Origin: Epithemia pelagica
Lineage: Eukaryota > Protista > Bacillariophyta
Direction: 5' to 3'
Length of the DNA: 64,000 bases
Assembly: GCA_946965045.2 (NCBI GenBank)
Contig: OX337228.1
Span: 682,001-746,000 of the forward strand
This document shows, piece by piece, positions 1 to 32,200 of this stretch; the stretch's first letter is position 1, and the number at the start of each line of letters is the position of its first letter. The notes under the pieces were generated by a model, which ran no database searches, was not told the DNA's origin, and saw only the letters and a list, made by a program, of their open reading frames with translations. The translations under genes were made by a program, and so were the position numbers.

Positions 1-301
1 AAGTCTTTACTTAGATGAGATTGCCACTCGGATGGCCGATCAATTCTCTCCTCTCTGCACGAAAGGACGAACGCGTCCGCGATCCTTCAGGTCAAACGTA
101 CAAAACTTCATTTGAGGTTTGGGGGAAACGGTGGGGACTGTCTACAATTGCCACTTGGGTTTAATTATGCCACCGTGACAGATTACTTAGGGAAAATTTC
201 ATCCGTTGCGCCGCGTGCCTTCCTCATTTTACAGCGCGACAGATTTTTTCCTGAGAGGCCTGATCCCATCAACCAAACAAAACGAGTGACCGTGAAAAAG
301 G

Positions 302-886: not shown

Positions 887-1019
887 TGATCCTGTAGTAA
901 GTCTTTTGTAGCGCTGACCTTAAATTAGTCCAGACAGTTGTTTCATTAGTCACGCAACAGGGTTTCTGCCTTAGGAGCAGCGTAGTTGTCGCATACCTAG
1001 AAAACCTTTTGTCAAATCA

Positions 1020-8419: not shown

Positions 8420-8608
8420 TCAGTCATTGCCAGCCTGCCTTACATGGATAGCTTCTTGATTCTGTCTTTGCAGCTGCCGTTCTAGTTCTTCATGAAGTAA
8501 CACAGCTTCGTTGTGTGCTTGTTCAAGCGATAATTGTTCTTGGGAAGCAACGGCAGCATAGAATCGAGGTCGCAAGTTCTCACTGCTGCTCAAGGTGAAC
8601 TGTAATCT
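8420..8608 (-). pseudogene. Downstream part of a host gene interrupted by copia element 1
   Basis: Removing the element and one TAATCT joins ...AAGTLRRL|QFTLSSSENLRPRFYAAVASQEQLSLEQAHNE... in one frame (coiled-coil-like). Confidence 0.6.
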
Positions 8609-9091
8609 TGTTGTTTTCCTGCTACCGTGGGCAACAAGAACGAGCTCAACCCGTGTAAAACAAAGTTAAGTTGTGTGCTTAGTCTTTACTTCTACTCGTA
8701 GCGATGGCTGTGATCCGTTGGATCATCGGCCGTTGGATAAAGTAGATTGGAGATCTTTTTGCGATCTTGTTGCAATCTTGGTTTCCTATGTATCGTCGTC
8801 CAGCCCGTTCTTGCCTGTCAGAATGTTTAGACGACGACAGTAATGGGATGCCACAGGATCTTGTTTCTCTATGTATTGGACTGGTTTGGGCCGTTATTGT
8901 TGATGACGCGTTGCTCCAAGTGAGACTTGGTCGGCCCATTGGTTCATTTGTTCTGTTCCTGTCCTCAATGGAATAACGATGGTGAGGTGGTACTCGTCTC
9001 TTGTCGGTCGAATCTTCTACTTCCGAATGCCGGTTCCGAATGCTGGTCGCACTTCTTCATTCACTGACCATATCTCTCATTATTTCGAACA
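8609..9091 (-). repeat. 3' LTR of copia 1
   Basis: Direct repeat of 14459-14939; preceded on the minus strand by the PPT (9092-9100). Confidence 0.95.
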
Positions 9092-9118
9092 CTCCCTCTC
9101 GGCCGAGTAGAGTCGATG

Positions 9119-12100
9119 TTACCATCCTTGTATGCTCTCGCGATGTTTCTCGAACGATGATTCGTTGAGGGATTTAGTGAAGATATCTGCGGTCTGATCG
9201 TCTGTCGCGCACGGGTGAATCTCGGTCTCTTTTCGTTCCACAAAAGATTTAAAATGGAACAACTTGGTGCACAGATACCGTGTTCTGGGTCTGTACTTGT
9301 ATATTGTTGCGAGTTCAACTGCACCACTGTTATCTTCGAAGGCCTTGCAGTGTATATTGGGCGTCGTGGAGAGAATAGGGAATCCCAAAACCTTCATCTC
9401 ACGAGTGATGGCCATCAATGGAATGACGGTACGTAGCGCGTGCGACAAACTGATGATCTCTGCTTCTGTGGTTGATAAGGCTATCTCTGACTGCAGTTTT
9501 GATTGCCAGAGGATGGGGCAACCTGCGTAGAAGACCACAAATCCCGTTCGAGACCGAGCCATGTCCTTGTTTGGGTGGTCGAGTTTGTTAAAAATTCCTG
9601 CAAAGTCCGCGTCGGCGAACACTTGGAAAGATTTCGTGGTGTCGGGTTTGAGTATCACTCCTTGCTTTCTTGTCCCTGCGAGATAACGTGCTATGTGTTT
9701 GACGGCTTTCCCATGAATTGCTTTAGGGTTTTCGCAAAATCTAGCGCATTGGTGGACGGCAAAACTAATATCTGGTCTCGTGCTCTTTTCCAGGAAGTTG
9801 AGTTTCCCGATCGCCGACCTGTAATGGAAATGGTGATCAAATGCTTTCCCGTCTTGGTCTTGTCTCAAGCGTACTGTGGTAGGTGCCGGTGTTTCTTTCT
9901 TCTTTGTTGATTCGTCGGCAAGGTGAAGATCTTGGAGGATTGAGTCAATTAAATGTGGTTGAGTCAAGTGGATGGTGCCATCCTCTTTTCTGTCGATGTT
10001 GACCCCAAGAAAATCGTTGACTCCGTCTTCATAGGTCATTTTCAGACCACTATTCTCCATTGTAACAATCAACCGGTCGAGTTCTTCTTTGTCGGGACCC
10101 AACAATAAGGAATCGTCCGTATACAAAATGTATACGCATTTACCATGATAAAAGAGGCACTCGTCGTGTGCACTTTGTTGGAAACCGACTTGCTTAAGTC
10201 GTTCCACGAGATGTTGATTCCATACTCGGGCACCCTGCTTCTGCCCATAGTAATTTTGCTTGATCTTGAGGATGTAGTCTTCTGCTCGCTGGTTTCCTTT
10301 TGTATCGAAGGTGAAGCTTTTCGGCGCTTCCATATACATATCAGTCTCGGCGACTGCTTGAGTATATGCCAGCACATAATCTACCTGTTTGATGTGCCAT
10401 CCTTGTGTGAGTGCCATAGTCAGGATGAATCTCACGACGGGCCTTTGAATCACGGATGCGTAGGTCTCCCAAGAGTTAACCCCCTTTTCTTGCATGGACC
10501 CATCATATGCCAACCTGGATTTCCATTTGTAGACTTCTCTTGTTTTTAGTCTTCTCTTTCGGACGCAACTCCACACTCCTCGAGAGATTAGCGCTCCTTT
10601 CGGAATGTCCTTTCGCTTGACCACCTCCCATAGCCCATTATCGCTATGATCTTGTACTTCTTTCTGTGCTGCCTTTATGAATTCTGCTTGATCCTCTTGT
10701 TTCATTGCTTCATGCCAGTACATAACATCTGGATTGCTGTTAGCTTGAGCCGTATTGACTGTCACTGATGGTTTAGCTGTGATAGCTACTTCTCCGATCG
10801 CGTCTTCGGGTTCTTGGAGCGAAGTCAAGTAGTCTTGATATCGTTGTGTTCGACGAGGAGTACGTTGGGAACGCCTAGCTCCCTCATGCTCTGGCATAGT
10901 TTCTCGTTCTTCCATAGGCGGGTTAGCATCGTTAGTTTGGTCCCTGTCTTCGGGTATCGTAACGTCGGTCTCACGTCGTGATGATGTCGTTGTACTTCTG
11001 AATTCCACGCGTGGTTGATTCTCCCTCATGCGTGGCTTGGATTTTGTGAACCCTGCCTTATACTGCCATTAAGATATTGGTTGGGCCTCTCCAAAACTTT
11101 TGCGTATGGTCTCAAATTGGTCATCGTATTGAACGTGAAATTGAGGTGACGTCAATCCGGAAGAGAGTGATAAGATAAGTCCGATTGTCCTTGCATGTTG
11201 GGGAGAATAGCCCAAGAAAATGCCAACTCGAGCTCGTTCAGACCATTTGGGAATTGGAGTTCCGCTTTGTAATTCGTTGTCGAGTACGTATGCTGGGCAT
11301 CCGAACGTATGTGCGAGTCTTGTATTGAATCTTACTGTTGAACCTGTAAATAGTTCCATTGGCGTCTTTTCTTTGTGTTTCTTCATTGGTGCCTCATTGA
11401 ACATGTCGTTCGCATATCGCACCGCGTAGGGCCATAAGTTCGTCGTCACTGTAGTAGGCCAGCGTCGTTGGGCGTGTATCAGCATTGTTCTTCCTGATTC
11501 TTGTAGTTCTCTAATACGTCGTTTGGCCATGCCACTTTGAAAGTGAGCATTAACCCCACTGAAAGTTAATCGTTGGTTCTTCATTTGTACTGCTTCCCGG
11601 AATTTATTGTCGACAAAGATTCCGTTATCGGCGTGATAATGTCGGATCTTGACTCCGTGAGTGTCTGCCCAAGCTTCAAACCGTTCTTTAGCTTCGATCG
11701 TGTCTTTAGCTGATGTACTCCGTTGAAGATGTACATAGCCTACCCCTGAGAAATGGTCGACGAAAACCGTAGCCACCCTATATCGATCCCGTGTGGGAGT
11801 CCCTCGAAGATGCGCAATGTAACCCGGAGTCTTTGATATCATTTGGTCGACCGACACACATTGACCCGGTGACGTCATGGTATCTAGTGTTCCACGGTGA
11901 CCTTTGATTCGCCAGGGTCGTCGCGTCGCTTTCCCGTACATACACGCCGTACAGACCGGGACCTTACAGTTTGCAAGTCGCCTTGGGAGTCCTCCTTGTC
12001 GTGCTAGGCTTTGGATTTTCGCCATCGACAGGTGACCCATTCTATGATGCGTCCGGAGTAACTCGAGCGTTGGACTTTCGGGGAGTACCTCTTCTTCATT

Positions 12101-13114
12101 AGGAATCACATGCACGGTATCGCTGGGGTCTATGAGGAACTCGGTAGTCATCGGTACATCTCTTGTTGGAAAATAATGTTCATTTTGTTCGTCGTCGAGA
12201 TTCTTGTTATTTCCGTCGATGCTCCAGTCGTCTCCCTCATATTGGTCCATTGTTGATGGAGACCGTTCCATGATGGATTCGTTGTCGTCTTCAATGAGGT
12301 TTGCGTTGTTGACCAGCAAGGGCTTGTTGTCCTCTTGTTGGATTGTCGTGCCTGCCTTTTTGCAAAACGCTTCGTATTTTGTGTATCCTGGCGCAGTCGT
12401 AAACTCACCCACATTTGAACCTCGTTGCTTCAATGGAATCGTCCGTTTGAAGAGTCCTTGCCCCCAAATCAATTCAATAGCGTTGCTATATGTCACGCAT
12501 CGTGTTCCTCTCGGCAAGGGTTTGATATCTTTTGCTGTTTGTGCCCAATGTTGGGGCGAAAGCAGTTTGGTTGGAGTCGATGGGATGTAGAAGGACCTTG
12601 GGAGCGTGATCGTATGGATCTTGCCGTCGTCGTCCTCGATATCCCATCGTATCGTCGTCTCGTATATATCTGGTTGATATGTTCCTGCTACTCCCTTGAC
12701 CTTTCGTTTGATTTTGATTGGTTTGGTGCAGCAGTCTTGTATATCATTCGCAATTGACGCGGTTGCGCAATTGTCAATCAAGATTTTCCTGCTGTCGGTA
12801 TCAAATCCGACTTCATGAGCCGCTCGGTGAGTAACTTGTCTGGTTGTCGAAGTCAGTATCGTTGCCATGCATAGTGCCCGGAGGAGTCCTGTATAGTTAG
12901 TTCTCTGTCGTCTCCGGCCATGGTCGATTCTTCGTTTCTTCTTCACTTTGATTTTGGTCGCGAGAGAGGTCGCTATGGAGTCGCATAGCCTTTGGACGTA
13001 TTCTAGGACTGACTCCAGGTGGTAGCACCTAGGACACCATAGCCCATAGCACAGCATAGTGTAACTTGATAAAAGGATCGTCACTAATACTGTGTAAACG
13101 AGCTGCTTGATCAT
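9119..13114 (-). pseudogene. pol: pol (PR-IN-RT-RNase H) of copia 1 with an in-frame TAA at 11069-11071 and integrase E->K
   Basis: The two track ORFs are in one frame; motifs ILIDNCATA (PR), HHRMGH..C..C, SVDQM/HADNG/QSGMAKRRI (IN), YTDDSLL (RT), FADADFAG/FEDNSGA/TADIFTK (RH). Confidence 0.93.
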
Positions 13115-13150
13115 GTCGTGCAGCCCGGGGAACCATCCCAGGTTTGGTTG

Positions 13151-14407
13151 TCACTCGTCGGTGCTGTTGTCGCTGTCATCGTCTTCATCGTGGGTAGCAC
13201 CGGCTAAGGCGCTAGCAAGGCGGAGTCCTGGGTTCGTTCCCGTGTTCTCAGACGTGGTACCATCTCCGTTCTCGTGGGCTGCGTCGTAGGCCCGTTTCTT
13301 ATCTCCTGTCAGACCACGTCCGTTACACGTTGCGGACGTGTGGTTTTTGTTGGTCGACCACTTTCCGTGCCACTTACACCAGTACCACATTTTTCTGTTG
13401 ACTTCTTTCGTCTCGGACTGACCACTCTTTGGTCCCACCGTAAGCCAGGCCTTATCGTTGTCAGTTGCCTTGTCCGTCTTCCCTTTGCTTGTCTGTTTCT
13501 TCTGGTCACTGGGGTTAGTCTTGCGTTTCTGTTCCTTGAGTTCATTCACGGATGCTTCAAGTGCGATCAATTTCTGGTCGCGTGCCGAGAGAGCCTGCCA
13601 TTTCTTCTGTTCCACGAGCGTCTGGTACTTGGTGCGAGCAACGCTCATTAGTTGACGCGGGGTCAGTCCTGGATTATCTCCTTCTTCATACGCGTTCTTC
13701 TTGCGACGAATGAACTCGAGAAAGTTATCGTCGTTCACGGTTTCGTACGCCTTAAATAGGATCGGTAGAAGGTCGAGCGTCTGCTCGCCGCGCGCGTTGA
13801 GAGCCCGAAGAGTCTCGTCTACATAGAAGTTAAACTTGGCGATGTCCGCGTTCACATCCATAATATAGATGTGGAGGTCAGCCAGGCGTTGGCGTAGAAC
13901 CATAACGGTGGCTTCGGTGTCCACATGTGCCAACTAGATCAAAACCTTGAGGAGAAGGGGTCCGGAACTACGCCCATTGATAGTGAAGTCTTCGCGTCGA
14001 ATGTTGACCTGTGCCTTGGCGTCGTCGGTAAGTGATGCCATAATGCAAGTGTATGCCATGTATGCATTCTGTGTCTGACGATTGGCTCCATTGAAGTGTT
14101 CAATATAGGCACGGACTTGTTGCAAGGAAACACGACCGTACTCGCTGGTGAGCAAACGAAGATTGGCGGCGGGGGCAGCGATCGTTTCTGGAATTGCGAA
14201 GATCGAGGTCCAGTTTTGTTCAACGATCCTGTCTTGGAGAGTATCGAGGAACGTCTTGAGTCCGTCGGCTTCGAGGTCGTAGAGATCTCCACTATCATAC
14301 AATCCACGAATCGCTTGCTTGTAAAACTTTGCTCCTCCTGCCGTTGTGAAGTTAATCACTTGATTGGCGTTGGCATGAGCGGGTGAAAGGGCAAAATTTG
14401 CGGCCAT
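13151..14407 (-). pseudogene. gag: gag of copia 1 with an in-frame TAG at 13934-13936
   Basis: Two consecutive in-frame ORFs (LLLKVLI*LAHVDTEAT); Cys/His motif near the C-terminus (WYWCKWHGKW...H...C). Confidence 0.85.
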
Positions 14408-14443
14408 GGTGGATGATGAATTGACAACGTTTTAGCTGTAAAC

Positions 14444-14458
14444 AGCGCAGAGGAAGCG
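14444..14458 (-). promoter_or_regulatory. Primer-binding site of copia 1, complementary to the D-arm of initiator tRNA-Met
   Basis: The + strand reads AGCGCAGAGGAAGCG(TG), matching the eukaryotic tRNAiMet D-arm consensus GCGCAGNGGAAGCGYG; abuts the 5' LTR. Confidence 0.65.
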
Positions 14459-14939
14459 TGTTGTTTTCCTGCTACCGTGGGCAACAAGAACGAGCTCAAC
14501 CCGTGTAAAACAAAGTTAAGTTGTGTGCTTAGTCTTTACTTCTACTCGTAGCGATGGCTGTGATCCGTTGGATCATCGGCCGTTGGATAAAGTAGATTGG
14601 AGATCTTTTTGCGATCTTGTTGCAATCTTGGTTTCCTATGTATCGTCGTCCAGCCCGTTCTTGCCTGTCAGAATGTTTAGACGACGACAGTAATGGGATG
14701 CCACAGGATCTTGTTTCTCTATGTATTGGACTGGTTTGGGCCGTTATTGTTGATGACGCGTTGCTCCAAGTGAGACTTGGTCGGCCCATTGGTTCATTTG
14801 TTCTGTTCCTGTCCTCAATGGAATAACGATGGTAAGGTGGTACTCGTCTCTTGTCGGTCGAATCTTCTACTTCCGAATGCCGGTTCCGAATGCTGGTCGC
14901 ACTTCTTCATTCACTGACCATATCTCATTATTTCGAACA
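14459..14939 (-). repeat. 5' LTR of copia 1
   Basis: Direct repeat of 8609-9091. Confidence 0.95.
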
Positions 14940-15675
14940 TAATCTGCGCAAGGTTCCGGCGGCACTTTGTTGGAGAACTTGATCGTTGCGGTAAAGGATT
15001 CCATGGCCACTGTACTGTCCGGATGATGTTGCAGATGTTGCTCCTGTTGACACGAGGGGCTTTTATTTTGGTTGTTGTTGTTTTGTGCCACTACACCTCG
15101 TGCCCTACCAAAAAGTCTTGAAGATTTTGATTGCACGAAATGTTGCGATGACTGTGTGACGAGGTTTCGGCTCCACTGGTTCCATAGTCAATCATGGACG
15201 GTTGTCGTCCACTCAAAGCATCGTCCTTGATTCGAGCCAAATATCGCATGAAATGGATAAAGGACGAATACAAAAGCCGAAACTTTCCATACCGCAGTCG
15301 CAACTCGGACTCGGCCATTACACCCGAAAACATGGATTCGTCACTGCTGCTCGATTCTTCATTCGGATCTTCTTCGACTTGAGCTTTGAAGGGTTCCAAT
15401 AGACAAAGGACTCGCCATAGCTCGGGTTGTCTGGTATAGGTGGCAATCCATTCTTTGGACAGGGGCATTGTCAAGACAGACAAGACTCCAAAAAGATCAA
15501 AATATGGGCCATACGGACCGAACGTCTCTGAGAGGATACACAGATTTGTCGGTTATGGTTCTACAGAAAATCCTCCATTCCCCTCACCCGGTGGTCCCAT
15601 TCTGGGGAACAAACGGCAGCTGCTGCCATCTGGTGCATAGTCGACAGGGAAGGGTGAGAGTGAGACGGATGACAT
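14940..15675 (-). pseudogene. 5' part of a host gene (weak F-box-like segment), with internal stops
   Basis: ATG 15675 is in frame with ORF 15091-15483 across a TAA at 15553-15555; ...KEWIATYTRQPELWRVLCLLEPF resembles an F-box end; continues across the copia insertion. Confidence 0.45.
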
Positions 15676-16024
15676 TAACCCTTTCAGCCCGGCACTTTTT
15701 CATGCCCGGTCACTGACAAATTTGTCATCAAAAATACTTAACAAAATTGCAATCCAATTAACAAATTACCACGTGAGTTTTGACCAACAACTCGTGATTC
15801 AAAAAATGATAACAATATCGCCATTTACCAAAATTGCGATTTTGTAGCGATCATATGTCAATGACTTTCATGTTATAGGACTACTGTTTGTCACCATACA
15901 TCCGTCTTAGTACGTTCTACCAGTTGGTGGTCGGACCACCGCAATCCGGCGCCTACTTCTCGAGTTACATATGTTTTTCATAAAACCACACGCACCTCAT
16001 TCATGTTACAAAGTACTTTCAACC

Positions 16025-18133
16025 ATGGAGAGCACCTCTGATGTCGCCAGAGAGCTCCATTACAACAACGAAGATGATAATGAAGAAGATGACGACCTCA
16101 TCACGAACCTTCACCGAGATGGTAAGGTTCGTCTGAGGGATATAAAGTCGGCTCAGAGAGAGAACCAGTACATCGACAACCAAATTGCCTCTGCCGATCT
16201 ATAACTACATAATCCCAAGGCATGCCAACAAGCCTTCTTGGAATCCGGTCCTTTGGGATTATTCTTCCTATTTATCCCCAAACGATTCATCGACGGTTTC
16301 ATCTTCAAAGCGACGAAAGAAGCCTTGGAAGCCAAACAGAGTGGGCAAAGAACCAAAATTGTTCTTACTACAAAGGCTCTTCGCTGTGTACTGGGGTTGG
16401 ATATAGCGCTTTCGCTCTGTAACTCAACTCAAATGAAGGAATTGTGGAGCACCAAATTATTTCTCGGTTCGTCTGCCTTCTCTTCTACCATGTCTAGAGA
16501 TACATTTGTCACCATCCGAGGATTGCTCCGAATCTATTCACAGTCGATGGCAAGAAATCCAGACGACCCTATGTGGACCTGTCGAGCTGCTATGTCCCAC
16601 ATACTCCGGAACTTCAGTTCCGTTGCTCAGCCAGTTGGTCCGGTTGCATTGGACGAGGCAAGCTGTCCTACGAAAGCAAAAACACGGGCCTCTACCTACA
16701 TACCGTCGAAGCCTGACAAATTTGCAATTCGTTTTTACGCCGTTGTTGGGTGGAGTTATACATACACATTCGGCCTTTTTGACAATGGTTCTGGTAATAT
16801 GACCAGTCAAACTCCGGCTGAGCGATATTTGAAGATCTTTGGAGAGTTGACATCCTCATTCAATCAACTCTGTCAAGCCACCAAAAGTCGTATTCGCAAT
16901 GCCTGTCCTGTGGCCGTGGACTCCGCCATCATGTTATGGGTCCTAATGATGGGCCTCTTGTACCGAGCTCTTATTGCTGCCAACGCCGTACGGCCGAGGG
17001 AATCAATGCCGCAAAGTGTTGTCTATATGGATAATTTCTATACCAGACACAGTCTGGCTCGAGCGATCGACGAATACACGGATGGGAATATCAAGGTAAC
17101 TGGTACAGTTCGATTGAACTTGGTCGACAAAGTCAACAAGAACAATGTTACCACGGCGATCAAGTATTTAGAGAATAAAGATCGAGGTTCCTGGGTATTG
17201 GTCAAGGCTTTCACTGGTGTTGTGCATCCAGACCGAAGCAAGCAACAGGCCAAAGAGAAGACAAAGGAGTATGCCAAGACTCTCCCTCTAATGAAAGTTG
17301 GCTTTGAGGTAGCGGACATTATCGAGATCGAAAAGGAATACGCCATTGCAGCGGATTGTTGTGGCTACATCGTATATCTCGATAAAAAGCCAGTGGTGTT
17401 TTACACTAATGATTTCTTTGGAACACCGTCCAAGACCTCCTTATATCAAGACGATCCGGAAGCCATTGAAAAGGTTCATGGCTTAGCGACAATGTGGCGC
17501 TGGGTTGGTCATTCTCTTCACATTCGAGCTTCCTTTAGAGCTCCTGCACCGGTTGTGGCATACAATCTTTTCATGAATGGGGTCGACAGGGCCGACCAGA
17601 TGAGAACTACCAACGCCTGTAAACGAAAAGAAACTGTACTGTCGATCCAAGTGTGGCACTTTCTCCAAGATATTTGCATCCTAAATGCATTCAATGTCTA
17701 CCTGAAGCTTAGGGAGATGAAACTTATCGAAGTCGAAGAAAAAGACGACACAGAAGAAGGTAATGACGAAGAAGGAGATGGGGTGGAGAAGCTATCTACG
17801 GCCAGGAAGCTCCGTGATTTCAAGAGGCAACTGGCATGTTCTCTCTGCACTCCGTATGCAGAGATTTATCAACAAAGCAGGAAAGCTCCGAAGTCGTCTC
17901 GGAAAAGGGGGACACCTTCCACAAGTGGTTCCTCAGTTCCAGCATCTGCCATCAGGATGAGACAATTGCAGGACAACGACAATATCTTAGTTGTTCGGAT
18001 CGGAAGGATCATTATCGTCCGTAAGAACCTTCTTGTCCTCTTCTATCATTTGTTGGACGTCATGCTCAATGACCTTCTTGTTGATTTCCAAAAGATCAAT
18101 GGGCTTGCCATTCGCTTCAGCGTCGAGGACTAA
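16025..18133 (+). pseudogene. piggyBac (DDE_Tnp_1_7-type) transposase with a premature TAA at 16202-16204 and no Cys-rich C-terminal domain
   Basis: Motifs VALDEAS, SKPDKFAIRFYA, VYMDNFYT, YNLFMNGVDRADQ; ORFs 15971-16204 and 16238-18133 share a frame. Confidence 0.9.
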
Positions 18134-18295
18134 CTTGGTGCCAAGAGGACTGAGGAACAAAGGGGAGGAAGCAGCCTTGCATTCATTCTTGAATGTCTTC
18201 TCATCGTCTTCTTCTAGGAACAAGCATTTCGCTTCCGACTGTGGGGTGGTCTGTTTATATCGTTTGGTACGACGTTGGTGAGCTGGAGAGTCCAT
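17987..18295 (-). CDS. Small antisense ORF inside the piggyBac (102 aa, charged/helical)
   Basis: ATG start about 200 bp from the right TIR; protein-like composition, while the overlapping transposase frame reads as junk. Confidence 0.35.
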   Translation of the reverse strand: MDSPAHQRRTKRYKQTTPQSEAKCLFLEEDDEKTFKNECKAASSPLFLSPLGTKLVLDAEANGKPIDLLEINKKVIEHDVQQMIEEDKKVLTDDNDPSDPNN

Positions 18296-19702
18296 GGTCC
18301 TTGAACAAGAGACGGTGAAAGAAGAAGATCGACAAATGAGTCTTGGGTTGCAGGTCCCTATAGATTATTTGTACGTGTAAGTACGTGGATTGATACACCC
18401 ATAGAGTATTTAGACTTTTTTGTTAAGTAGTTGCTGCGGTCACTAAAAAAGTGAAATGACTGACATCAGAAAATTGAGTTGCCGGGCTGAAAGGGTTAAC
18501 TTGCATATACGCATCAACACATCTTTCTTGCGATGCAGATTCCTGTATCGACGCTGGGAAACAAAGGACAGCTGATTCCAATCACAACAATTATTCTGTC
18601 GCCATCGACTCTTTTCCTCTGAAACACACTTCTCAAGGAACACTACACGAGCTTCCTGTCGTCGTATAAAGTGACATCAAGAAACAACATGGTGTGCGAT
18701 TCCACACAAACACGTAATGGAACACAACAAAAGGAGGAAGAAGCAAGAGTTCCTTGGTGGAACGGATCCTTCCCTGTCGTGCTTTCCGGTACTAGTAGTA
18801 GAAGAAGACAGGAACATTTCACGAAACTTGGACGTTGGGTGGGCGCTCCAGCACACACTCTTGGATCATTCCCCCATTGGGATGCGTATGACAACCACAG
18901 CCACAACCACAAGGAACCACCCGTCGAGACTGTCTTCTTGAGTGGTTCTTACAAACTCTTTGTCTTGCGGTCACCATGAATGACTGGCCGACTCTTGGTC
19001 ACCGTCTTTGTGGGTAACAAAACGGTCAAGGGGAGTGCCAGGCACAACCAGTGAATGCACGAGCAAGGATTGAGGATCAGGTTCATAATCCTTCTTCTTC
19101 TACCACTGGACTGACGAGAATGAGGTACAACAGCAACAACAAGGAGGGTACACCATGGATTGGACCAATCGCTCCACGGCCAAACCAAAACACAGCCAAT
19201 CCAAATGGTACTTCACAAGACTGTTGGAGGTTGGTCCCTCTTGTCATTCTCCTCCTCCGACCACCAGACGGAGAATGGGATGAACACTAATGGCTTGGAC
19301 GAGGAATCCTACCATGGTGCTTCGTATAGGGCACTGCATGCACGGAAATACGGGGATATTCCAAATGATATACAAGTTGTGACTAAAGGTCCTCGTCGTC
19401 TTGTGGTGCAGGAGGAAGAAAAGAAGTCGACCGAATCGTGGTTTCTGCTTTAACAGAAGTCATGACCATCATGTTGTTGTTCCCCCACTGATGGATTCTT
19501 GTCATCGTGCCGCCTGTAAAAGTAGAACGACACCAAGATATTGTTATGCACTCGTTTCGTTCCTAAGAGAACACAGCAGCAGCAACCTTGGATCGTTTGC
19601 TCGTCTGCCTGAGATGGGATGTTGTATTCTTGCAATGATGCGGTTGCAACTTACCCCAAACAGGGGCGACCCGGTCAGTCGCACCTAGTGTTGCATTCCC
19701 TT

Positions 19703-19832: not shown

Positions 19833-19891
19833 GGGGGTAGGTTGCAACTCCCGATCCGTCATCTCAAACTAATTACAGAGTACTACCTCTA

Positions 19892-21880
19892 GTGCCTTCG
19901 TAGGTGAAGCGGACAGACTGCGCATTCTACCGGCCAAAAGACCATGGTGGTCTTTTAGGATTACTCACTCAATATAGCACCTCCATAGAACTGTGATGAT
20001 AGACTTCATCCTCAGACAATGCTTTAGGTCCCCACGGGGCAGATTTTCCATATTGTCCATTCTGATGGAGTTCTTAGTCATCATTGTAGAATCATTTTTT
20101 CTCTTTTGGCGATTTGGCCGCTAGATTGCCGGTTGGCCGGTGACTTCACCATGGTATTTCTCCACCAATACTGGACCAAATGCCGTGAAATTGAAACATG
20201 TTATCGATCTTAGTGTAAATGAGAACGCGTTTGACCCCTATACGCTATCTCTAAGCATAGGATTCAAACGAGCTTTCATCCCATTGCGTTGATTTTTCGA
20301 CGCGGCACGTACCGCATGAGATTTGCATTGTCATTCGTCGTCCTGCAGCTCCACGGATCCGTCCGCTCCGGACGTCCTACTTAATAGGCTACTAATTTAG
20401 GTTCTACTTTAGAGATCTGGCGTGTCAAATCGACCATCGGCGGTATGGTCGTGAAGCAATGGCCAACCATCGATGAACGCTTCTTTTCGACGCACCACAC
20501 ACCACACGAGTTTTTGACCGAAGGATGACGAGATGCGAATCCACGGATCCGTCCGCTCCGGACGTCCTACTTAATAGGCTACTAATTTAGGCTCTACTTT
20601 AGAGATCTGGCGTATCAGATCGAAGATCGGAGCCTTGGATGTGATGGTCGAGGCGTTCATTGATGGACAATTGTTCGTCGTGGCACGGAGCACAATGATT
20701 TTGGACCAAAGGCCGATGCTGTGCCAAAATTTGAGAATTGCCGCTCCGGACGTCGTATTTAATAGACCTTTACTTTAGATACTACGTTAGGGTATCCAAG
20801 TCTCAGATTCAGTGTAGGGGCCCTGGTTCGCCACACCACACAGCACACGAGATTTCGACCGAACGACAAGACGCCCTGCGGCTCCACAGATCCGGCTGCT
20901 CTGGGTGTCCTAGTTTGTTGGCTTTAAGGTAAGCGTCTACGTGAGAGATCCGAAGTCTCAGATCTCTTACGTAGCAGCCATGGTTGTGATGAACGAGGTG
21001 ATCATCGTTCGGCGCTTTTTCGCCACACCACACACCACACGAGATTTCGACCGAACGATGACGCCATGCCAATTTTCGGCCACGGCCTCTCTGGAGTTCC
21101 TACTCACTAGCTAGAGCATTGATTTAAACATCGTTTTAAAATGCCCAAGTCCCAGACTCTACGTACGGGCCATTGCTGTACTGATCGAAGCGATCATCGT
21201 CGAACTCTTTTTTTCGTGCCATGGACAACACGATTTTTCGACCGGAAGAGGACGTTGCTCAGCTTTCGTTTTGAAGACTGCTGATCTCTTCTACGTTATT
21301 ATTATCTATAGCTTTATTCTTGCGCCATGGTCATTCCAAAAGATGCGATCAAAGGCGGTGTTTTGATGCATTTTTTGTTGTTGCGCTTAAAAAAGAATCT
21401 GGCACGCGCTTTCAGGCTTAAATTGTATGTCCCACTCTCCCCCAAAATATTTAAACGGCTATTGTACAAAGTCCCCCAAAAATAAAAATGAGTTTTTTGC
21501 TTTTTGGCCTGAAGATTGAACATTGGAGACAGAGAGAGACGAGAAACAATGGGCCATCGAAGTCGAGAGCTCATCAGACATAAAACAATGGAAACTTTGT
21601 TGAGACCCTACAGTAGATTACTGAAGTTTCAGAGCTGGCGTAGGTGCCATGGTTGTCGAGCGCGAAGCGATCGTCGATGGACAATTTCTCGTCGTGGCAC
21701 AGACCACATGAGATCTCGACCAATAGACGACGCTACGCGGCTCGTTCAATCTGAGCTCTCTGCACGTCCTACGTAATGGAAACTTAGTTGAGAGCCTACA
21801 GTAGATTACGGAAGTGTCAGAGCTGGCGTAGGTGCCATGGTTGTCGAGCGCGAAGCGATTGTCGATGGGCGATTTTCGCG
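19892..21880 (-). repeat. Left TIR plus progressively diverged ~190-bp subterminal units
   Basis: 19892-~20630 is the reverse complement of the element's right end; degenerate units continue to ~21250, with related units at 21599/21789. Confidence 0.85.
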
Positions 21881-22356
21881 TAGCAAGCGCGCTCTAACGA
21901 AATCCATACTGATCGTAAAGCAGAAACCGTTTTAACTAATGAAGCAAGTGTTTTGCATTGTTTCTAACGTCAGCACTATATGTCGTTACTCAGCTATAGA
22001 CTACTCGAGCCATGGAGGTGGCAAGCCTATTTTTCGTCGTCAGAACTATCGCACAGGTACGCGAACACAACCCTGCGCTTCTTGTTCTCGGGATGAGTCG
22101 GTTGAGTCGCGGCTTTTTTCTTCGTGGTGGCTCGCGGTGGGATCGGCACGGAAAAAGACGAAGATACATTGTAGGGAGGTTTCTTATCGACCTTGGAAGG
22201 ATCTCGTTGGCGGCAGCGTCCGGGGGATTGTCGTCGCATGAATTGTAGGAAGGGACTCGTGGCCTGGTTGTGATGCCATTTGTCGTGTTGCTTGGGAGGG
22301 GCCGCGATCAAGTGACGATGCGGTGCAGCAGAAGCTGGATCTTGGTGGGCTTTCCC

Positions 22357-22605
22357 TTCTTCTTCTTCTTCTTCTTCTTCTTCTTCTTCTTCTTCTTCTT
22401 CTTCTTCTTCTTCTTCTTCTTCTTCTTCTTCTTCTTCTTCTTCTTCTTCTTCTTCTTCTTCTTCTTCTTCTTCTTCTTCTTCTTCTTCTTCTTCTTCTTC
22501 TTCTTCTTCTTCTTCTTCTTCTTCTTCTTCTTCTTCTTCTTCTTCTTCTTCTTCTTCTTCTTCTTCTTCTTCTTCTTCTTCTTCTTCTTCTTCTTCTTCT
22601 TCTTC
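22357..22605 (+). repeat. Perfect (TTC)83 / (GAA)83 microsatellite
   Basis: Direct reading. Confidence 0.98.
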
Positions 22606-22946
22606 TCGGAATTTTGTGGGAAGGTGGACACCAAGTCACCATGACTCCCAAGCGTCAACTCTTCGAAGACTATTCTATATAGATCAATACTGTATAATTC
22701 ACTCCTTCTCTTCATAAATTTTCGAGCGCTAGTGCTTACTTGAGGGCGTGGCGTGTCGAAAAAGATTTTGGCGTATAGCCAGGTATAGCATGGTCACACG
22801 TCCCCCAAATTTCCCCCAATCAATAGATGAATTTTCTTGTGAATGTGGACGGACAGAGAGAGGAGAGAGACAAGAAACTATAGGCCAGTGAAGTTGACAG
22901 CTCATTCAACACAACAATACTCTAAAGAATAACATGCAGGCATAAA

Positions 22947-23261
22947 CTAATATTTTGTATGGTCAAACTTGAGTCCGCCGAGCACTTTTGTAGGTGATTT
23001 GAAACGCAGATCTTGACTGTGCTTGTAGTATTTTTGGAGACGATGTTCCGAGTTGTATTTGGGCGGTAAATTGTATTCATTACTGGCTGGGTATGGGTGG
23101 GTGGTCCCATCTCGTCCTTGGTACACGTAGAAGTGGGAACGTGGATTGCCAAGACTGCCACTCTTGAAGCCTCCAGCGTGAACGGTATCACCTCGTGTGA
23201 TGAGGAGTGTTCCGTACGGAATGTCAATCACCTCACCCAACTTATCTTGTTCCTGGCCGCG
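22947..23261 (-). pseudogene. C-terminal half of a 2OG-Fe(II) dioxygenase-like (DSBH) domain
   Basis: VIDIPYGTLLITRGDTVHAGG...GNPRSHFYV matches the distal-His and Arg pattern of PhyH-like folds; the N-terminal HxD half is absent. Confidence 0.5.
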
Positions 23262-25462
23262 ACTTCAGTTACCTTACCCATACCATTAAACTCATCGTTC
23301 GCCACGAGACCTTTACGGTCCATGTTGCGCTGACGGATTTGCGGAGTGTACCTTTGTACAGGCCGCATTCTCTTCGCGATCTTGTTGCGGTTGTTTTCGT
23401 GGTTCGCCGTTCCAAGACCCCACGGTTTGCGCAACACTTCAAGAAGCTCCGTCGAAACCGCCAAAAAACGTCCTCGAGGATCACCAACGTCATCAATCAA
23501 CAAATGACCATGGTTCCTATTCAATGTGCTCGCTTTTTCTTCGGGACTCGCTTCCACCATGGCCGCGATTTGGGCTGGAGCTGCCGATCCTCCCGGACTG
23601 GACACATGACCGAATGTCAGGTTGTCTTGAACGGGAACCTGCGCGTATCCTCCAATAGGCAGCTGCCCATCGGTGGGCAAGGAATATGGCTGACTTTGCC
23701 CTTGGTACTGTCCCGATGCTTGGTACGGCGAGTGATGCTGCGTTTGGTGGTGGTGCGTTTGATGTTGGTACGGTTGGTGGTAGGGCGGAGGAGGTTGGTA
23801 CGGCTGGTAGTGCTGCGTTTGATGCTGGTACGGCTGGTGGTGCTGCGTTTGATGCTGGTACGGCTGGTGGTGCTGCGTTTGATGCTGGTACGGCTGGTGG
23901 TAGGGCAGAGGAGGTTGTTGTGGAGGATGGGGAAATTGCGGTGGCGGAGGATGAGGACTGTACTGTGGATGTTGGTGCGGTGGATGGCCATATGGAGAAG
24001 GTTGGGTCGGATGTCCGGGATGGCCGCGAGCAGGCAGAAGATCACGGACTTGAGGAGGGGAACCAAGAGGAACAGAGGTACCCACACCGACAACATCCTG
24101 AAAAGCACCACCAGGAGAATGGGGAGGATCAGGAACATGCACATGAGGAGCACGAGGCTGAGGATCAGTGCCAATAGGAGCATCATCATCTTGCAAAGGA
24201 GCACGTTTCTTTGTCTTCTTCTGCTTTTTTGTCATTCTCCGTGAATCTTCCTCCCTCGACCGACCTCGTTTTTTCCCCCCGCCATCTTCAGGTTCGTCAG
24301 GGACTTGGGTTGAAGCTCGGATGACTGGCTCCTCGTCGTTACTGGAAGATTCCTTGGAGAGGTTGTAAAATAAATACAACTCGTCGCCTTCCTTGATGTC
24401 CTTGGTTGCACGAACGATGAGATTTCTCTCGACTCGAACGTTGTATTTGCCATATGCTTCATGGGGAGGATCATCGGTCCCGTACTGTTTGTAGTAGTAG
24501 TCGTTGATCATGCCCATCCCCATGTAGAAGAAGTCTTCGGTGTCAGCTTGAACTGTGCGTGCTTCATCCTTGCTCACTCCGAACTGCAACGCATACTCGG
24601 TCCTTGGAACACTCCGCGAGGTGATGTCTAATCCTCCGTAGACACCAATCACCTCGTCTTCATCGTAGTTCTGTGCTGCGAACAGGCCAAAACCAGCGTC
24701 GTCAAGCTCCGATCTCTTCACAGTAAACAAATGCGTCTTTCCAAGCGAGATCTTGAAGATGGGATCGTGGTCGAACGAGTAGCTTAGCAACGAGGCAGGC
24801 TTGTAGTTCTTCCCACGATGCTTCTTCATCAGAATCCCAATTCCAGCTGACTTTGGCACCACTTCTGCATTCTTTTCCTTCTTCGTCCCTGAACCTGGCC
24901 TCCGAATTGGTGCATCTTTCACCGAAAAGGATATACTTATCTTTTTCGAGATGTACTCTCCAAAGGCAAGGACAAGCACAGCACCATTGTCGATCGAGGA
25001 CGCAAGATCCTTGAGTCCCTGTTTGAAATTTGTCCAGGGATCTCGCCCAGGAGCCCTCCGCTTCGCCACTGCAGCTATCGCGGCCTTGTAGTCTTTCTTG
25101 CGAACGTCGGTTAGGCGCTGGTCTGTCGCCGACTTTGACCCAGAATAGTCTTTGTCGTCGCCTTGATGACGACGAAGGCTGTCCGCAACCCTGTTTTCTT
25201 CCACGATTGCCAGATCCTCTTGCGAAAGTCTCCCATGACCCGCTCTTGCTGTCACTGTTGTCGTCGCTTCAGGAGGCGCTTCGTCTGCTGTCGCTGTCGT
25301 CGTCGCTTCAGGAGGCGCTTTGTCTGCTGCTGCCACTGCTGCTGCACCGGGTGCCTCTGTGATAGCATCTGCAGCATCCACAAGAACATGAAACCACGAA
25401 CCCATCCTTTCTTGATCTTGAGTTTGTGCTGCTTTGAATGATTTCTTCGTTGGTTCTGCCAT
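23228..25462 (-). CDS. SET-domain protein with a His/Gln/Pro-rich repeat tail
   Basis: SELDDAGFGLFA, GVYGG, GMINDY and RATKDIKEGDELYLFYN match SET motifs I-IV; (HHQPYQHQTQ)n 30-bp repeats at ~23745-23905; ATG at 25462. Confidence 0.85.
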   Translation of the reverse strand: MAEPTKKSFKAAQTQDQERMGSWFHVLVDAADAITEAPGAAAVAAADKAPPEATTTATADEAPPEATTTVTARAGHGRLSQEDLAIVEENRVADSLRRHQGDDKDYSGSKSATDQRLTDVRKKDYKAAIAAVAKRRAPGRDPWTNFKQGLKDLASSIDNGAVLVLAFGEYISKKISISFSVKDAPIRRPGSGTKKEKNAEVVPKSAGIGILMKKHRGKNYKPASLLSYSFDHDPIFKISLGKTHLFTVKRSELDDAGFGLFAAQNYDEDEVIGVYGGLDITSRSVPRTEYALQFGVSKDEARTVQADTEDFFYMGMGMINDYYYKQYGTDDPPHEAYGKYNVRVERNLIVRATKDIKEGDELYLFYNLSKESSSNDEEPVIRASTQVPDEPEDGGGKKRGRSREEDSRRMTKKQKKTKKRAPLQDDDAPIGTDPQPRAPHVHVPDPPHSPGGAFQDVVGVGTSVPLGSPPQVRDLLPARGHPGHPTQPSPYGHPPHQHPQYSPHPPPPQFPHPPQQPPLPYHQPYQHQTQHHQPYQHQTQHHQPYQHQTQHYQPYQPPPPYHQPYQHQTHHHQTQHHSPYQASGQYQGQSQPYSLPTDGQLPIGGYAQVPVQDNLTFGHVSSPGGSAAPAQIAAMVEASPEEKASTLNRNHGHLLIDDVGDPRGRFLAVSTELLEVLRKPWGLGTANHENNRNKIAKRMRPVQRYTPQIRQRNMDRKGLVANDEFNGMGKVTEVAARNKISWVR

Positions 25463-25820
25463 GGTCGAATAAGTGGAACGATGAAACGCGAAGAAACGCA
25501 CCACGTCTTCGTACTTCGCAGGTCAATTCAACAAAAACCGAAGAACGGGGTTTCGAAAACGGCCGTTAACTTATTAAGCCTTGCACGCTCCTGCGCGCAT
25601 TTTATGGTCGACGGGCGAGCATGCGCAGATTTTAGGCACTTTTTTTGGTATTAGTCCTGAAACAATGCGACTGCTTCACATGTATTTTCCCTCCAACATC
25701 GATCCACAGTTCATTCCACAACCATGTTTCCAAATCGGAAATTTGTTTTCTTCACCGTGTGCTTGCAGTATCGTTCAACTACGCTCTGAAGCATTGAGAA
25801 GAGTAACGAGAACGACGACA

Positions 25821-28512
<2,692 letters not shown>

Positions 28513-28782
28513 TTTGTCCCGAACACGAGAACTACGACTCTATATTGTTACATGGCTTTACATATTATAGTAAGTAAGAACTTAAGAATGCATTATTGAT
28601 GAGAGTATAAAAACCAGATTTTAGTATTAACGCTTATGTCATGGAACCGGCCTACGAGATTCTAGTACTTTCCTGCTTGGGCCACTTCTCCGTCGCTTTG
28701 TGATAAAGCGACATGAACGTAGTCATCCCAACAACACTCATCCGCACAGTAATGACCATGGGCCCCATTGCCATCTTGGTGT

Positions 28783-29187
28783 CTAAGGAATGGGCAGTTT
28801 CGATCGTGAGCTCTCCTTTGACAAGGGAGCTGCTTTTCGAACGGAACTTCCTGCACGCAATTTTTTTTGGATTGATCCAACTGGGATAACAACATCAGGC
28901 ATTGAGTCATCCTTCTTGTCTCGACCAAACGCGCTAATTGACAGCATCCCACCATTGTTACCGTACTTTGAGCGCTGCATAAGAACGACACCTCGATCCA
29001 CCACAAGCGTCCCCTTTTCGCCTTTCCCCCCCAGAGCGGCGTCTTGGACGTAGACATTCACACCCGCTTCGCCATAGATCGTTACACGGCTACCTTGGAG
29101 AAGAATCTCCTGCCCTTCATCTTGCATCACGGTGAACCCATTTGGAAGGAGAATTCGATTGTGCGATTCGTGCTCGTATTCCGACAT
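28783..29187 (-). CDS. Beta-rich cargo ORF of unknown function (probably frameshifted near its end)
   Basis: MSEYEHESHNRILLPNGFTVMQ... with alternating hydrophobic pattern; no family recognised. Confidence 0.35.
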   Translation of the reverse strand: MSEYEHESHNRILLPNGFTVMQDEGQEILLQGSRVTIYGEAGVNVYVQDAALGGKGEKGTLVVDRGVVLMQRSKYGNNGGMLSISAFGRDKKDDSMPDVVIPVGSIQKKLRAGSSVRKAAPLSKESSRSKLPIP

Positions 29188-29627
29188 CGTCTTATTACGT
29201 CTATTGTAAATGTAACAAAAGGAGTGGTGAGACGAGACGAGACAAACGAGCAGTCTCACCGTGCAAAACAAGCTTTAGATAGACACTTACTTCTTGTCGC
29301 CTACTCCTAATTGGATTGTCAAATGAAAGTCTTTACTTAGATGAGATTGCCACTCGGATGGCCGATCAATTCTCTCCTCTCTGCACGAAAGGACGAACGC
29401 GTCCGCGATCCTTCAGGTCAAACGTACAAAACTTCATTTGAGGTTTGGGGGAAACGGTGGGGACTGTCTACAATTGCCACTCGGGTTTAATTATTCCACC
29501 GTGACAGATTACTTAGGGAAAATTTCATCCGTTGCGCCGCGTGCCTTCCTCATTTTACAGCGCGACAGATTTTTTCCTGAGAGGCCTGATCTCATCAACC
29601 AAACAAAACGAGTGACCGTGATAAAGG

Positions 29628-30080
29628 GTGTCAACAAAAAACAAAAAGGATAGTATAGCAACGACAACACTATTGACGAGACAACAGCGAAAAGATATGT
29701 CGCTCTACATCGACAAGCGCCGGGTTAGTGCGCGGCTTCAAAGTCGCACTGACAAGAGTGTTGCGATGGCAACGGGTACGTCAAAACCCGCTCTTCGCCC
29801 CATCCATAAAGGTGCCCAGAAGAACAACAAGAACAACAAGAACAAGGAGAAGACGGTTACCAAGAAAGAGAAGGAAGAGCTCTTGGCCGGGTGTGATCCA
29901 ATCAAAGCTGGTGGCTCATCGATCCTCAAGATTCGCGATGACTTAGTTGAGCACGGATCGAACGGTGGAAGCAACACTCCTTTGCGCCACACCAAGATCA
30001 AGTTTGCTGATGAACTCAGCCCAGTTCATGAGGAGCTCAAGAAGCCTTTATCACGTGTCTCACTCATGAGCAACGCTTAA
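29628..30080 (+). pseudogene. Truncated copy of ORF 302-886
   Basis: 14-bp deletion at ~30077 creates a stop; one fewer AACAAGAAC unit. Confidence 0.5.
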
Positions 30081-30324
30081 CACTGCATCCTCTTGTGGAA
30101 CCGCTGTCGATAGCGAGCTTTCCTTTGACTTTGCCGAGACCCAACAAGATGAGCATGACGACGTCTACAACCATTATGTGGCCTCCTAATGATCCTGTAG
30201 TAAGTCTTTTGTAGCGCTGACCTTAAATTAGTCCAGACAGTTGTTTCATTAGTCACGCAACAGGGTTTCTGCCTTAGGAGCAGCGTAGTTGTCGCATACC
30301 TAGAAAACCTTTTGTCAAATCAAT

Positions 30325-31807
30325 CATGACCTCATTCATCACAACCATGGATCCTACGTAAGATCTGAGACTGCTGATCTCTCAAGTAGAGCCTAAACTA
30401 AAAGATATGTTAATATCACGTACAGAGCCGCCATGGCCGAATATCGGCATGGCGTCATCGTTCGGTCGAAATCTCGTGTGCTGTTTGGTGCGTCGAAGAA
30501 GCCTCGAACGAGGATCGCATCTTTCATCACAACCATGGCGCCTACGTGAGATCTGAGACTTTCCAAACCTTATGTACATCTTAAACTAAATCGTATGTAA
30601 GTATCACGTACAGAGCCGAAATGGCCGAATATCGGCATGGCGTCATCGCTCGGTCGAAATCTCGTGTGCTATTTGGTGTGGCGAAAAAGTGTCCATCAAT
30701 GATCACCTCGTTCATCACAACCAAGGCTCCGATCTTCGATCTGATACGTCGGATCCCTAAACTAGAACCTAACGTAATAGAGTAGAGAGTAGGACGTCCG
30801 GAGCGGCCATATTTATGGAGCCGCATCTCGTCATCCTTCGGTCAAAAACTCGTGTGGTGTGTGGTGCGTTGAAAAGAAGCGTCCATCGATGGTTGGCCAT
30901 TACTTCACGACCATACCGCCGATGGTCGATCTGATACGCCAGATCTCTAAACTAGAACCTAAATTAATAGACTATTAAGTAGGACGTCCGGAGCGGACGG
31001 ATCCATGGATTCGCATCTCGTCATCCTTCGGTCAAAAACTCGTGTGGTGTGTGGTGCGTCGAAAAGAAGCGTCCATCGATGGTTGGCCCCATGGCCATAC
31101 CACTGATGGTCGATCTGATACGCCAGATCTCTCACGTCCGGAGCGGACGGATCCGTGGATTCGCATCCCGTCATTCTTCGGTCGAAAATTTGTGTGGCGT
31201 GTGGTGCGTCGAAAAGAAGGGTCCATCGATGGTTGGCCATTGCTTCACGACCATACCGCCGATGGTCGATTTGACACGCCAGATCTCTAAAGTAGAACCT
31301 AAATTAGTAGCCTATAAAGTAGGACGTCCAGAGCGGAAGGATCCGTGGAGCTGCAGGACGACGAATAACAATGCAAATCTCATGCGGTACGTGCCGCGTC
31401 GAAAAATCGACGCAATGGGATGAAAGCTCGTTTGAATCCTATGCTTAGAGATGGCGTATAGGGGTCAAAAGTCTTCTCATTTACACTAAGGTCGATAACA
31501 TGTTTCAATTGCACGGCATTTGGTCCAGTATTGGTGGAGAAATACCATGGTGAAGTCACCGGCCAACCGGCAATCTAGCGGCCAAATCGCCAAAAGAGAA
31601 AAAATGACCCTACAATGATGACTAAGAACTCCATCAGAATGGACGATATGGAAAATCTGCCCCGTGGGGACCTAAAGCATTGTCTGAAGATGAAGTCTAT
31701 CATCACAGTTCTATGGAGGTGCTATGTTGAGTGAGTAATCCTAAAAGACCACCATGGTCTTTTGGCCGGTAGAATGCGCAGTCTGTCCGCTTCACCTACG
31801 AAGGCAC
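30325..31807 (+). repeat. Right subterminal ~188-bp array plus right TIR
   Basis: Anchors at 30454, 30642, 30830, 31020 and 31170 (last unit 150 bp). Confidence 0.9.
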
Positions 31808-32200
31808 TAAGTAACAGTACATAGCAAGCATATGTGCTGAAACCCGATGGTCCTTCGTACCTATTGACTCGTGCCAGGAGAAGTCGAAGTCATGTCGATG
31901 TCGACGAAGAGAAGCGTCGAAGAGAAAAGTGCCTAGATCGGAAACCGCGTAGGAGTAAAATTTCCCGCAAGAGATAGCGAGTATACCGAGCCAATGCAAG
32001 CAAGGCGAGTCGTCCCGGAGAGTGGGGTAAACCTGATAATATCAGCCCCACTTCATCATAGAAAGGCAGACCGACTATGTTAGCTATTGCTAGGTTAGTA
32101 ATACGATCAACAGAATAATAGGTAACTTAAAATATAGTGTAATCGGTCCCCACCACCACCCAGTTTTTGCAACCGCGACACAAGAACACTTTACAGCTAT

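Follow-up and report, generated by a model that had tools for sequence, protein, structure and literature searches.

We analysed a 64,000-nucleotide stretch of the genome of the diatom Epithemia pelagica (contig OX337228.1 of assembly GCA_946965045.2, positions 682,001 to 746,000; hereafter the window), in which a DNA element of 11.9 kb lies between long terminal inverted repeats (TIRs). The element spans positions 19893-31806 once the flanking 4-mers are set outside, and in our view it is very probably a multi-gene piggyBac-superfamily DNA transposon, present here as a decayed copy that is no longer autonomous. Its family, which we call family A, contains a gene that joins a SET domain to an Fe(II)/2-oxoglutarate (2OG) dioxygenase, a transposase gene placed head to head with this SET-2OG gene, and two accessory genes, g3 and g4. 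The copy at 19893-31806 is referred to as W2 and an upstream copy at the window start as W1. The exact SET open reading frame (ORF) of W2 and a transposase fragment are recorded in a public assembly, which supplied sister loci; among these, L002 and L003 correspond to W1 and L001 is a third copy. Families B, D, and E are related to family A, and family C is canonical piggyBac.

Ends, target site and sister copies of the element

Self-comparison of the window identified two inverted arms at 19890-20565 and 31134-31809, 676 nt long and 96% complementary, in agreement with a preliminary description of this DNA in which near-identical inverted repeats of about 0.7 kb bound the unit. The left TIR (19893-20565, forward strand) opens with the tip TGCCTTCGTAGG, and the right TIR occupies 31134-31806 on the reverse strand. 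Units of ~190 bp (188-190 bp), with weaker inverted and direct matches, extend inward from both TIRs and form a left subterminal array at 20294-21875, inverted relative to the right side, and a right array at 30319-31132. All family-A ends compared read xTAG followed by TGCCTTCGTAGG. The tip TGCC (TGCC...GGCA) is common to four related families, and the TIRs measure 676 nt in family A, 215 nt in family D, and ~95 nt in family B.

The flanking bases had previously been read as a TA duplication. We observed instead that the target-site duplication of the clade is 4 bp, NTAG and mostly CTAG, with matched flanks in five related elements: CTAG/CTAG at the family B elements L004 (6.95 kb) and L003, the family D element L010, and the family E element L011, and ATAG/ATAG at the family B element L005. 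As ATAG/ATAG is not palindromic, the four bases are a direct duplication that lies outside the TIR and is not limited to TA, and the pair at L005 rules out a Tc1/mariner-like target. CACTA-type ends (TAGTG) were also rejected, since their orientation is wrong and the TAG is part of the duplication. W2 itself has CTAG on the left (19889-19892), assigned as a 4-bp duplication from the related elements, and CTAA on the right (31807-31810), with one mismatch between the two. A later mutation is plausible because the two TIRs of W2 are 4% apart. The 10 bp outside several family-A ends are also mutually similar (gtac...acc), which might stem from a target preference that extends beyond the 4-mer, or from insertions that landed in related repeats.

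The right-hand part of W1, comprising g4 and the right end, lies at 1-2353 on the forward strand and is followed by CTAG at 2354-2357, which bears out the end of a second copy noted earlier at 2354. Window positions 1-2357 match 29327-31809 at 98-100% in the self-comparison. The interior of W2 is collinear with W1 (at L002) and with L001 from the SET gene through the right end, at 96-98% identity, so the window unit is a family member rather than debris between two solo ends. With copies ~2% apart, family A looks to have been mobile recently.

We weighed the possibility that there is no single mobile unit, and that two solo long ends happen to enclose nested transposon debris. The locus is a transposon island whose other members include a canonical piggyBac, a Harbinger-like element, and a long terminal repeat (LTR) element, the flanking 4-mers of W2 are imperfect, and neither W1 nor L001 has a left end in the stretches retrieved, all of which would fit such an arrangement. 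However, the interior order and orientation are shared with W1 and L001 as described above, and families B, D, and E repeat the transposase-g3-g4 layout within matched pairs of ends. We therefore consider an accidental enclosure highly improbable and treat W2 as one copy of family A.

Several further features of the copies and their surroundings were recorded. L001 contains three tandem copies (L001:2863-6065) of a 1,247-bp unit that covers window 22608-23610, downstream of the SET gene, and its right-end array has grown to ~3.5 kb of 190-bp units (L001:13000-16750). The right flank of W1 (window 2358-2400, GGTGTCCATGACGG...) resembles family B subterminal sequence (GGTGTGCCCATGACGG), a family B element adjoins the truncated left side of W1 (L003:13780-13930), and related elements appear to nest within one another. 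An LTR retrotransposon (8604-14753) with 300-bp LTRs of 99% identity (8604-8903 and 14454-14753) is located between W1 and W2. W2 also contains a (CTT)n microsatellite of 84 units (22356-22606). An Rfam scan of the window gave no match.

Transposase, barrel modules and accessory genes

The transposase gene of W2 lies on the forward strand from an ATG at 25821, a start backed by the alignment of relatives. Its first intron (27371-27456, 86 nt, GTGAGT...AACAG) is conserved, and splicing it out joins HFWPG to NWREQL, which matches the intron-less relative P0206. A deletion of ~842-856 bp, placed at 27613-27614 by comparison with L001 and L002, took the core recognisable as PF13843, the putative catalytic Asp motifs D1 (VVDESM) and D2 (RDSWFGS), and intron 2. 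The residual C-terminal part (27614-28512) keeps D3 (ANRIDRHNH) alone of the three catalytic Asp motifs, together with a Cys-rich C-terminus (28300-28509; KRKCAVCGNDTRSMCGHPAC...CKPSLGC...C..H) that aligns with the Cys columns of relatives. The frame is further disrupted by a private 5-bp deletion (CACTT) in exon 1 at 27196-27197 and by the tandem duplication of 26 bp near 27865-27890.

With its recognisable core gone, the W2 transposase has no Pfam match in any of its pieces, even at E<=10; the same was true of g3, g4, and the N-terminal modules described below. The piggyBac assignment of W2 thus rests on its sister copies. Transposases at L002:9131-9796 (E=1.7e-7), L001:9463-9975 (E=1.3e-7), and L005 (E=4.4e-6) match PF13843, which was also the sole Pfam family recorded among 35 relatives (24/35). 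The window fragment itself points to PF13843 clusters by Atlas features only. In a MAFFT alignment, D1 was paired with LDEA of the canonical family-C transposase, and D2 and D3 (NRIDRHNH), both conserved within the clade, were left unaligned to that protein. Comparison of the family-A transposase pieces with the Protein Data Bank (PDB) by phmmer gave no piggyBac match. On the sequences of its copies, family A is predicted to encode a transposase of DDD type that has a PF13843 core and a Cys-rich C-terminal domain, and the earlier proposal of a long-TIR transposon with a piggyBac-like transposase is upheld.

Two N-terminal modules, at 25821-26015 (module 1) and 27012-27194 (module 2), are conserved in at least 12 relatives from the E. 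pelagica genome and metagenomes. An AlphaFold model with 14 sequences as input predicts two five-stranded barrels, with pLDDT values of 86-95 for module 1 and 61-91 for module 2. A disordered linker of ~270 residues separates them and contains a poly-Thr/acidic stretch, the poly-Thr being encoded in W2 by a (CAA)n run at 26338-26543. In Foldseek comparisons, Royal-family and SH3-like barrels dominated the list at weak E values of at least 0.03. Module 2 resembles Tudor and chromo-barrel domains, with VIA Z scores of 7-8.3 over the whole domain to Tbtudor, PHF1/PHF19, the UHRF1 TTD, and the MRG chromo-barrel, and R67 DHFR and KOW domains match it at similar VIA scores. The Pfam Tudor, chromo, and PWWP models did not match the barrels even at E<=10. 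These comparisons support SH3/Tudor-like modules at the level of fold, as had been suggested for W2, but methyl-lysine reading did not gain support: a reader cage would comprise 3-4 aromatic residues, and just W29 of module 1 and W433, F437, and D438 of module 2 are conserved across the 14 relatives. Families B, D, and E have the barrels too, although they carry no SET-2OG.

Downstream of the transposase, g3 (28662-29271, reverse strand) is a conserved, beta-rich gene with two 1-bp deletions at 28860 and 29024. It is found with invariant motifs in families A, B, D, and E and at locus L012 (see below). The g4 gene (29628-30080, forward strand) encodes a basic protein with an HMGN-like RRVSARL motif that is restricted to families A and B. 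A 14-bp deletion at 30078 cost it the conserved C-terminal motif VDSxLSFxFAETQ, which is common across families. The g3 of family E (L011:13990-14562) is 99.5% identical to that of family B (L005:11889-12461), whereas identity between these families falls to 68-77% for the transposase and to 43% for the g4 protein; such a near-identical gene amid diverged neighbours suggests recombination between families B and E.

All four genes of W2 are disrupted, and nothing there is expected to work. Contigs from three DNA read sets carry undeleted variants at the lesion sites, indicating that the lesions are private to the window copy. These contigs represent DNA, since the intron is kept and their lengths reach 0.5 Mb. 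W2 would be mobile only through a transposase supplied in trans, presumably by cut-and-paste as in piggyBac with a changed target specificity.

The SET-dioxygenase gene and its persistence

A divergent spacer of 358 bp (25463-25820) separates the transposase ATG from that of the SET gene at 25462. On the reverse strand, the open frame 23228-25504 is 758 aa long, and the SET ORF proper (23228-25462) comprises 744 aa from the ATG to a premature stop that results from a deletion frameshift. An N-terminal region is followed by the SET domain, a basic/acidic stretch, P/Q/H-rich repeats, and the start of the dioxygenase. The SET domain (24362-24694, residues 271-381; GFGLFA, VYGG, MINDYYY, ELYLFYN) is still in frame and matches PF00856 along the full model (positions 1-105 of 105; E=8.5e-6), its 26.6 bits exceeding the cutoff of 22.4. 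Together with the two start codons, this match agrees with the head-to-head SET gene and 358-bp spacer of the preliminary description. Its nearest clusters in the Atlas are SET (0.96), and EZH2 is the nearest PDB sequence. A word-indexed homologue search with the SET region returned 3397 candidates, none at E<=1e-3. Canonical SET domains carry the catalytic motifs GxG, YxG, NH(S/x)C, and ELxxDY. The family-A domain keeps GFG, VYGG, and ELYLFYN, with the Tyr retained, and no post-SET Cys cluster was seen.

The C-terminal half of an Fe/2OG dioxygenase lies at 22947-23256 on the reverse strand, out of frame with the SET ORF, and carries the distal His (TVHAGG) and the Arg (NPRSHFYVY) of the active site. 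The frame 22950-23264(-) encodes ...GTLLITRGDTVHAGG...NPRSHFYVY, so the half-domain recognised earlier downstream of SET is present, and an intact version occurs in L001. There, ~334 extra bp are located exactly at window position 23256, and a continuous ORF of 370 aa (L001:5756-6868) places PHLDF upstream of the TVHAGG and Arg motifs. In W2 and W1, a frameshifting deletion of ~334 bp at 23256 removed the HxD half. A short intron linking the SET ORF to the downstream frame was ruled out in favour of this deletion, as the L001 ORF is continuous. In L001, conversely, 1,090 bp are missing, the SET domain among them.

Used as query in an exhaustive HMMER search, the L001 ORF recovered 252 relatives, of which 20 reached E<=1e-30. 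Across 55 aligned relatives, H146, D148, and H240 are invariant and R253 is nearly so, and no Pfam family matched the dioxygenase domain in any of the 55 members. An AlphaFold model (AF2) of L001:5759-6706(-) reached a pLDDT of 87.6 and a pTM of 0.87, and gave 263 PDB matches at E<=1e-3 with Foldseek and VIA Z scores of ~12. The top PDB entries listed are Fe/2OG oxygenases, either PhyH-clan enzymes or prolyl hydroxylases (FtmOx1, AndA, AsqJ, OkaE, KanJ, P4H), with vaccinia C16 the sole exception among the VIA matches listed. No JmjC or TET entry was found among the best 50 matches listed for each PDB comparison (Foldseek, VIA). On the strength of the model, we confidently assign the second domain as a PhyH-like Fe(II)/2OG dioxygenase and, by the matches listed, not as JmjC or TET, which leaves the "eraser" role proposed earlier unsupported.

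Relatives of the dioxygenase include transcripts from marine protist transcriptomes and genes that sit amid housekeeping genes in other protists and eukaryotes, and the domain thus has cellular homologues. The SET region had no match in the dioxygenase-family relatives, and Pfam SET was found in 0/55 of them, so the fusion was not found outside the E. pelagica genome. Because families B, D, and E contain the transposase, g3, and g4 without a SET gene, SET-2OG is, judging by gene content, an addition specific to family A. An 806-aa ORF upstream in L005 was considered as a family-B SET gene and rejected as an unrelated low-complexity protein. A 400-aa gene with a Pfam PhyH match (L011:18148-19350) lies ~2.3 kb to the right of the family E element.

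The SET gene occupies the same place and orientation in W1, W2, and L001. Two diverged SET-then-2OG pairs were found on other contigs, at L006 (L006:9227-10687; SET 56% and 2OG 45% amino-acid identity to family A) and at L012 (L012:8084-13178; SET 46%, 2OG 44%), the latter with a g3 homologue downstream. Neither pair has a transposase homologue within 10 kb; the two may represent either what is left of older elements or the lineage that donated the gene. With three copies and two diverged pairs, SET counts as a stable component and is not the single-copy gene that the preliminary description would have taken as a mark of chance capture. All three lineages keep GxG, IND, ELxLFYN, PH(I/L)DF, TVHAGG, and R.HFY, and the ratio of non-synonymous to synonymous divergence (dN/dS) between lineages is 0.33-0.59. 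Collectively, the retained motifs and these ratios argue for a long-lived two-domain gene under some constraint, which is not in itself evidence of a benefit to the element. The ancestral family-A gene would have encoded a SET methyltransferase-like domain, a low-complexity linker, and a PhyH-like dioxygenase with an intact HxD...H...R site. In the most likely role, to which we give about even odds, its product would be a bifunctional protein-modifying enzyme serving the element. Such an enzyme would have chromatin or the transposition machinery as its target, and the shared 358-bp spacer would drive its expression together with the transposase.

Several observations weigh against the reading of W2 as a copy of a transposon served by this gene. 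The flanks of W2 agree in only three of four bases (CTAG on the left, CTAA on the right). L001 may be an allele or segmental duplicate of the window locus rather than an independent insertion: it shares ~2.3 kb of left flank with the window (17202-19528; L001:1-2204), including ~1 kb beyond the canonical piggyBac end, then jumps to window position 21620 without a left TIR, and its right flank differs from that of W2. Ectopic recombination is a further option for the shared left flank. No whole SET-2OG gene exists among W1 and W2, which lack the HxD half, and L001, which lacks the SET domain. As no copy compared is whole, we reconstruct the fusion by combining copies that complement one another, guided by the same order of domains at L012 and L006. 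IND replaces the canonical NH in all three SET lineages (MINDYYY, FINDPYY, LINDHLH), which makes SET activity uncertain. Synonymous sites are saturated (dS 0.7-1.9) in the comparisons behind the dN/dS values, and decayed copies were among the sequences used. The sequencing runs found were DNA and gave no transcript evidence. Finally, the cargo could be a passenger without benefit to the element, since other protists have homologues of its dioxygenase in the midst of ordinary cellular genes.

A passenger of this kind would be a SET-2OG host gene taken up once and hitch-hiking ever since, with its conservation reflecting the recent common ancestry of the copies. The restriction of SET-2OG to family A, and not B, D, or E, would fit such an origin, as would the cellular homologues and the repeated deletion of the gene among the copies compared. 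W1 and W2 differ in the gene by 4 synonymous and 8 non-synonymous changes, which is indistinguishable from neutrality. However, three lineages at 44-56% amino-acid identity share the SET-then-2OG order and the catalytic motifs, with dN/dS below 1 between them, and the L012 pair beside a g3 homologue suggests a longer tie to such elements. We consider passive capture less likely than not.

Relation to known transposons and possible roles

Family A resembles the piggyBac superfamily in its PF13843 (DDE_Tnp_1_7) core with putative DDD-type motifs, its Cys-rich C-terminal domain, its 4-bp palindromic-type target duplication, and its organisation as a presumed cut-and-paste TIR element. TTAA is described as the general target of the superfamily, with TIRs of 12-19 bp in which the first cytosine is conserved (PMC5381638). 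In contrast, TTAA is replaced by CTAG/ATAG in the present clade, with the 4-bp length and palindromic character kept, and the tips are TGCC...GGCA instead of CCC...GGG. The TIRs, at ~95-676 nt across the families, are likewise not of the short CCC type, and those of family A reach ~0.7 kb on ~190-bp repeat arrays. The clade further differs in its transposase introns, its two N-terminal SH3/Tudor-like barrels, and its two to three accessory genes.

A canonical piggyBac of ~2.8 kb lies at 15675-18499 of the window, ~1.4 kb to the left of W2. Its ends read TTAA, CCCTTTCAGCCCGGCA...TGCCGGGCTGAAAGGG, TTAA, with a perfect 16-bp CCC...GGG TIR, and its transposase ORF (16238-18133, 631 aa) matches PF13843 at E=2.3e-29. 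With this element beside family A, the genome holds both the classical type and the divergent clade. Uncharacterised elements "weakly related to piggyBac" were reported from Phaeodactylum and Thalassiosira with ends, target duplication, and accessory genes not given (Maumus et al. 2009, PMC2806351). They possibly belong to the same divergent diatom piggyBac-like clade. In full-text literature searches, we found no paper on a CTAG-targeting piggyBac clade or on a transposon-borne SET-PhyH-like fusion.

Accessory genes of related kinds are known from other transposons. A secondary account describes SET genes taken up by HarbingerS and MuDR families of Phytophthora (Kojima & Jurka 2014, via PMC12730594). 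These are, like family A, stramenopile DNA transposons with a SET histone-methyltransferase-type gene; they differ in transposase superfamily, and in family A the SET domain is fused to an Fe/2OG dioxygenase. Fungal DNA transposons (KDZ and others) encode TET/JBP dioxygenases (Kojima 2025, PMC12730594). They share with family A an accessory Fe/2OG dioxygenase of presumed action on epigenetic marks, but belong to another transposon superfamily, and the family-A dioxygenase is PhyH-clan-like (FtmOx1, AsqJ, KanJ, P4H). SETMAR/Metnase, a domesticated primate host fusion of SET with a mariner transposase, also ties a SET domain to a DNA-transposase gene, whereas the family-A SET domain belongs to a separate gene inside the element.

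The preliminary description had proposed that the element edits or reads chromatin to target insertion or escape silencing. In its full form, this hypothesis holds that the Tudor-like barrels read methyl-lysine, the SET domain writes it, and the dioxygenase erases it, giving directed integration or counter-silencing. All three folds occur in family A, the divergent shared promoter region suggests co-expression, g4 has its HMGN-like RRVSARL motif in families A and B, and transposon-borne SET and TET/JBP genes have been reported as presumed counter-silencing devices (PMC12730594). The terms "writer" and "reader-like" are supported at fold level. However, the listed neighbours of the dioxygenase are PhyH-clan hydroxylases with no JmjC or TET among them, the SET domain is without the NH histidine, and the barrels keep only one or two conserved aromatics (W, F) and fit the SH3 folds of KOW and R67-DHFR at roughly the level of Tudor. 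As families B, D, and E have barrels without SET-2OG, reader and writer do not form an obligatory set. We consider such a division of labour improbable. With W2 itself non-functional, IND in place of NH, and a PhyH-like dioxygenase, chromatin targeting and escape from silencing are best treated as conjecture.

W2 is broken, and its value is that of a dated, fully bounded member that defines, with its sisters, the ends and ancestral gene content of its family. The boldest reading of that family is of a piggyBac-type clade retargeted to CTAG, in which family A carried a toolkit of barrels, a nucleosome-binding-like g4, and a SET-dioxygenase that marked or unmarked nucleosomes for site choice or resistance to silencing; we regard it as a long shot. 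piggyBac is a major genome-engineering tool, and its TTAA specificity is taken as characteristic of the superfamily. Comparison with a natural clade that inserts at CTAG instead would help to show how the transposase recognises its target. Together, g3 and g4 across families and the SET-dioxygenase in one of them would add a protist case to the few DNA transposons with epigenetic-type enzymes.

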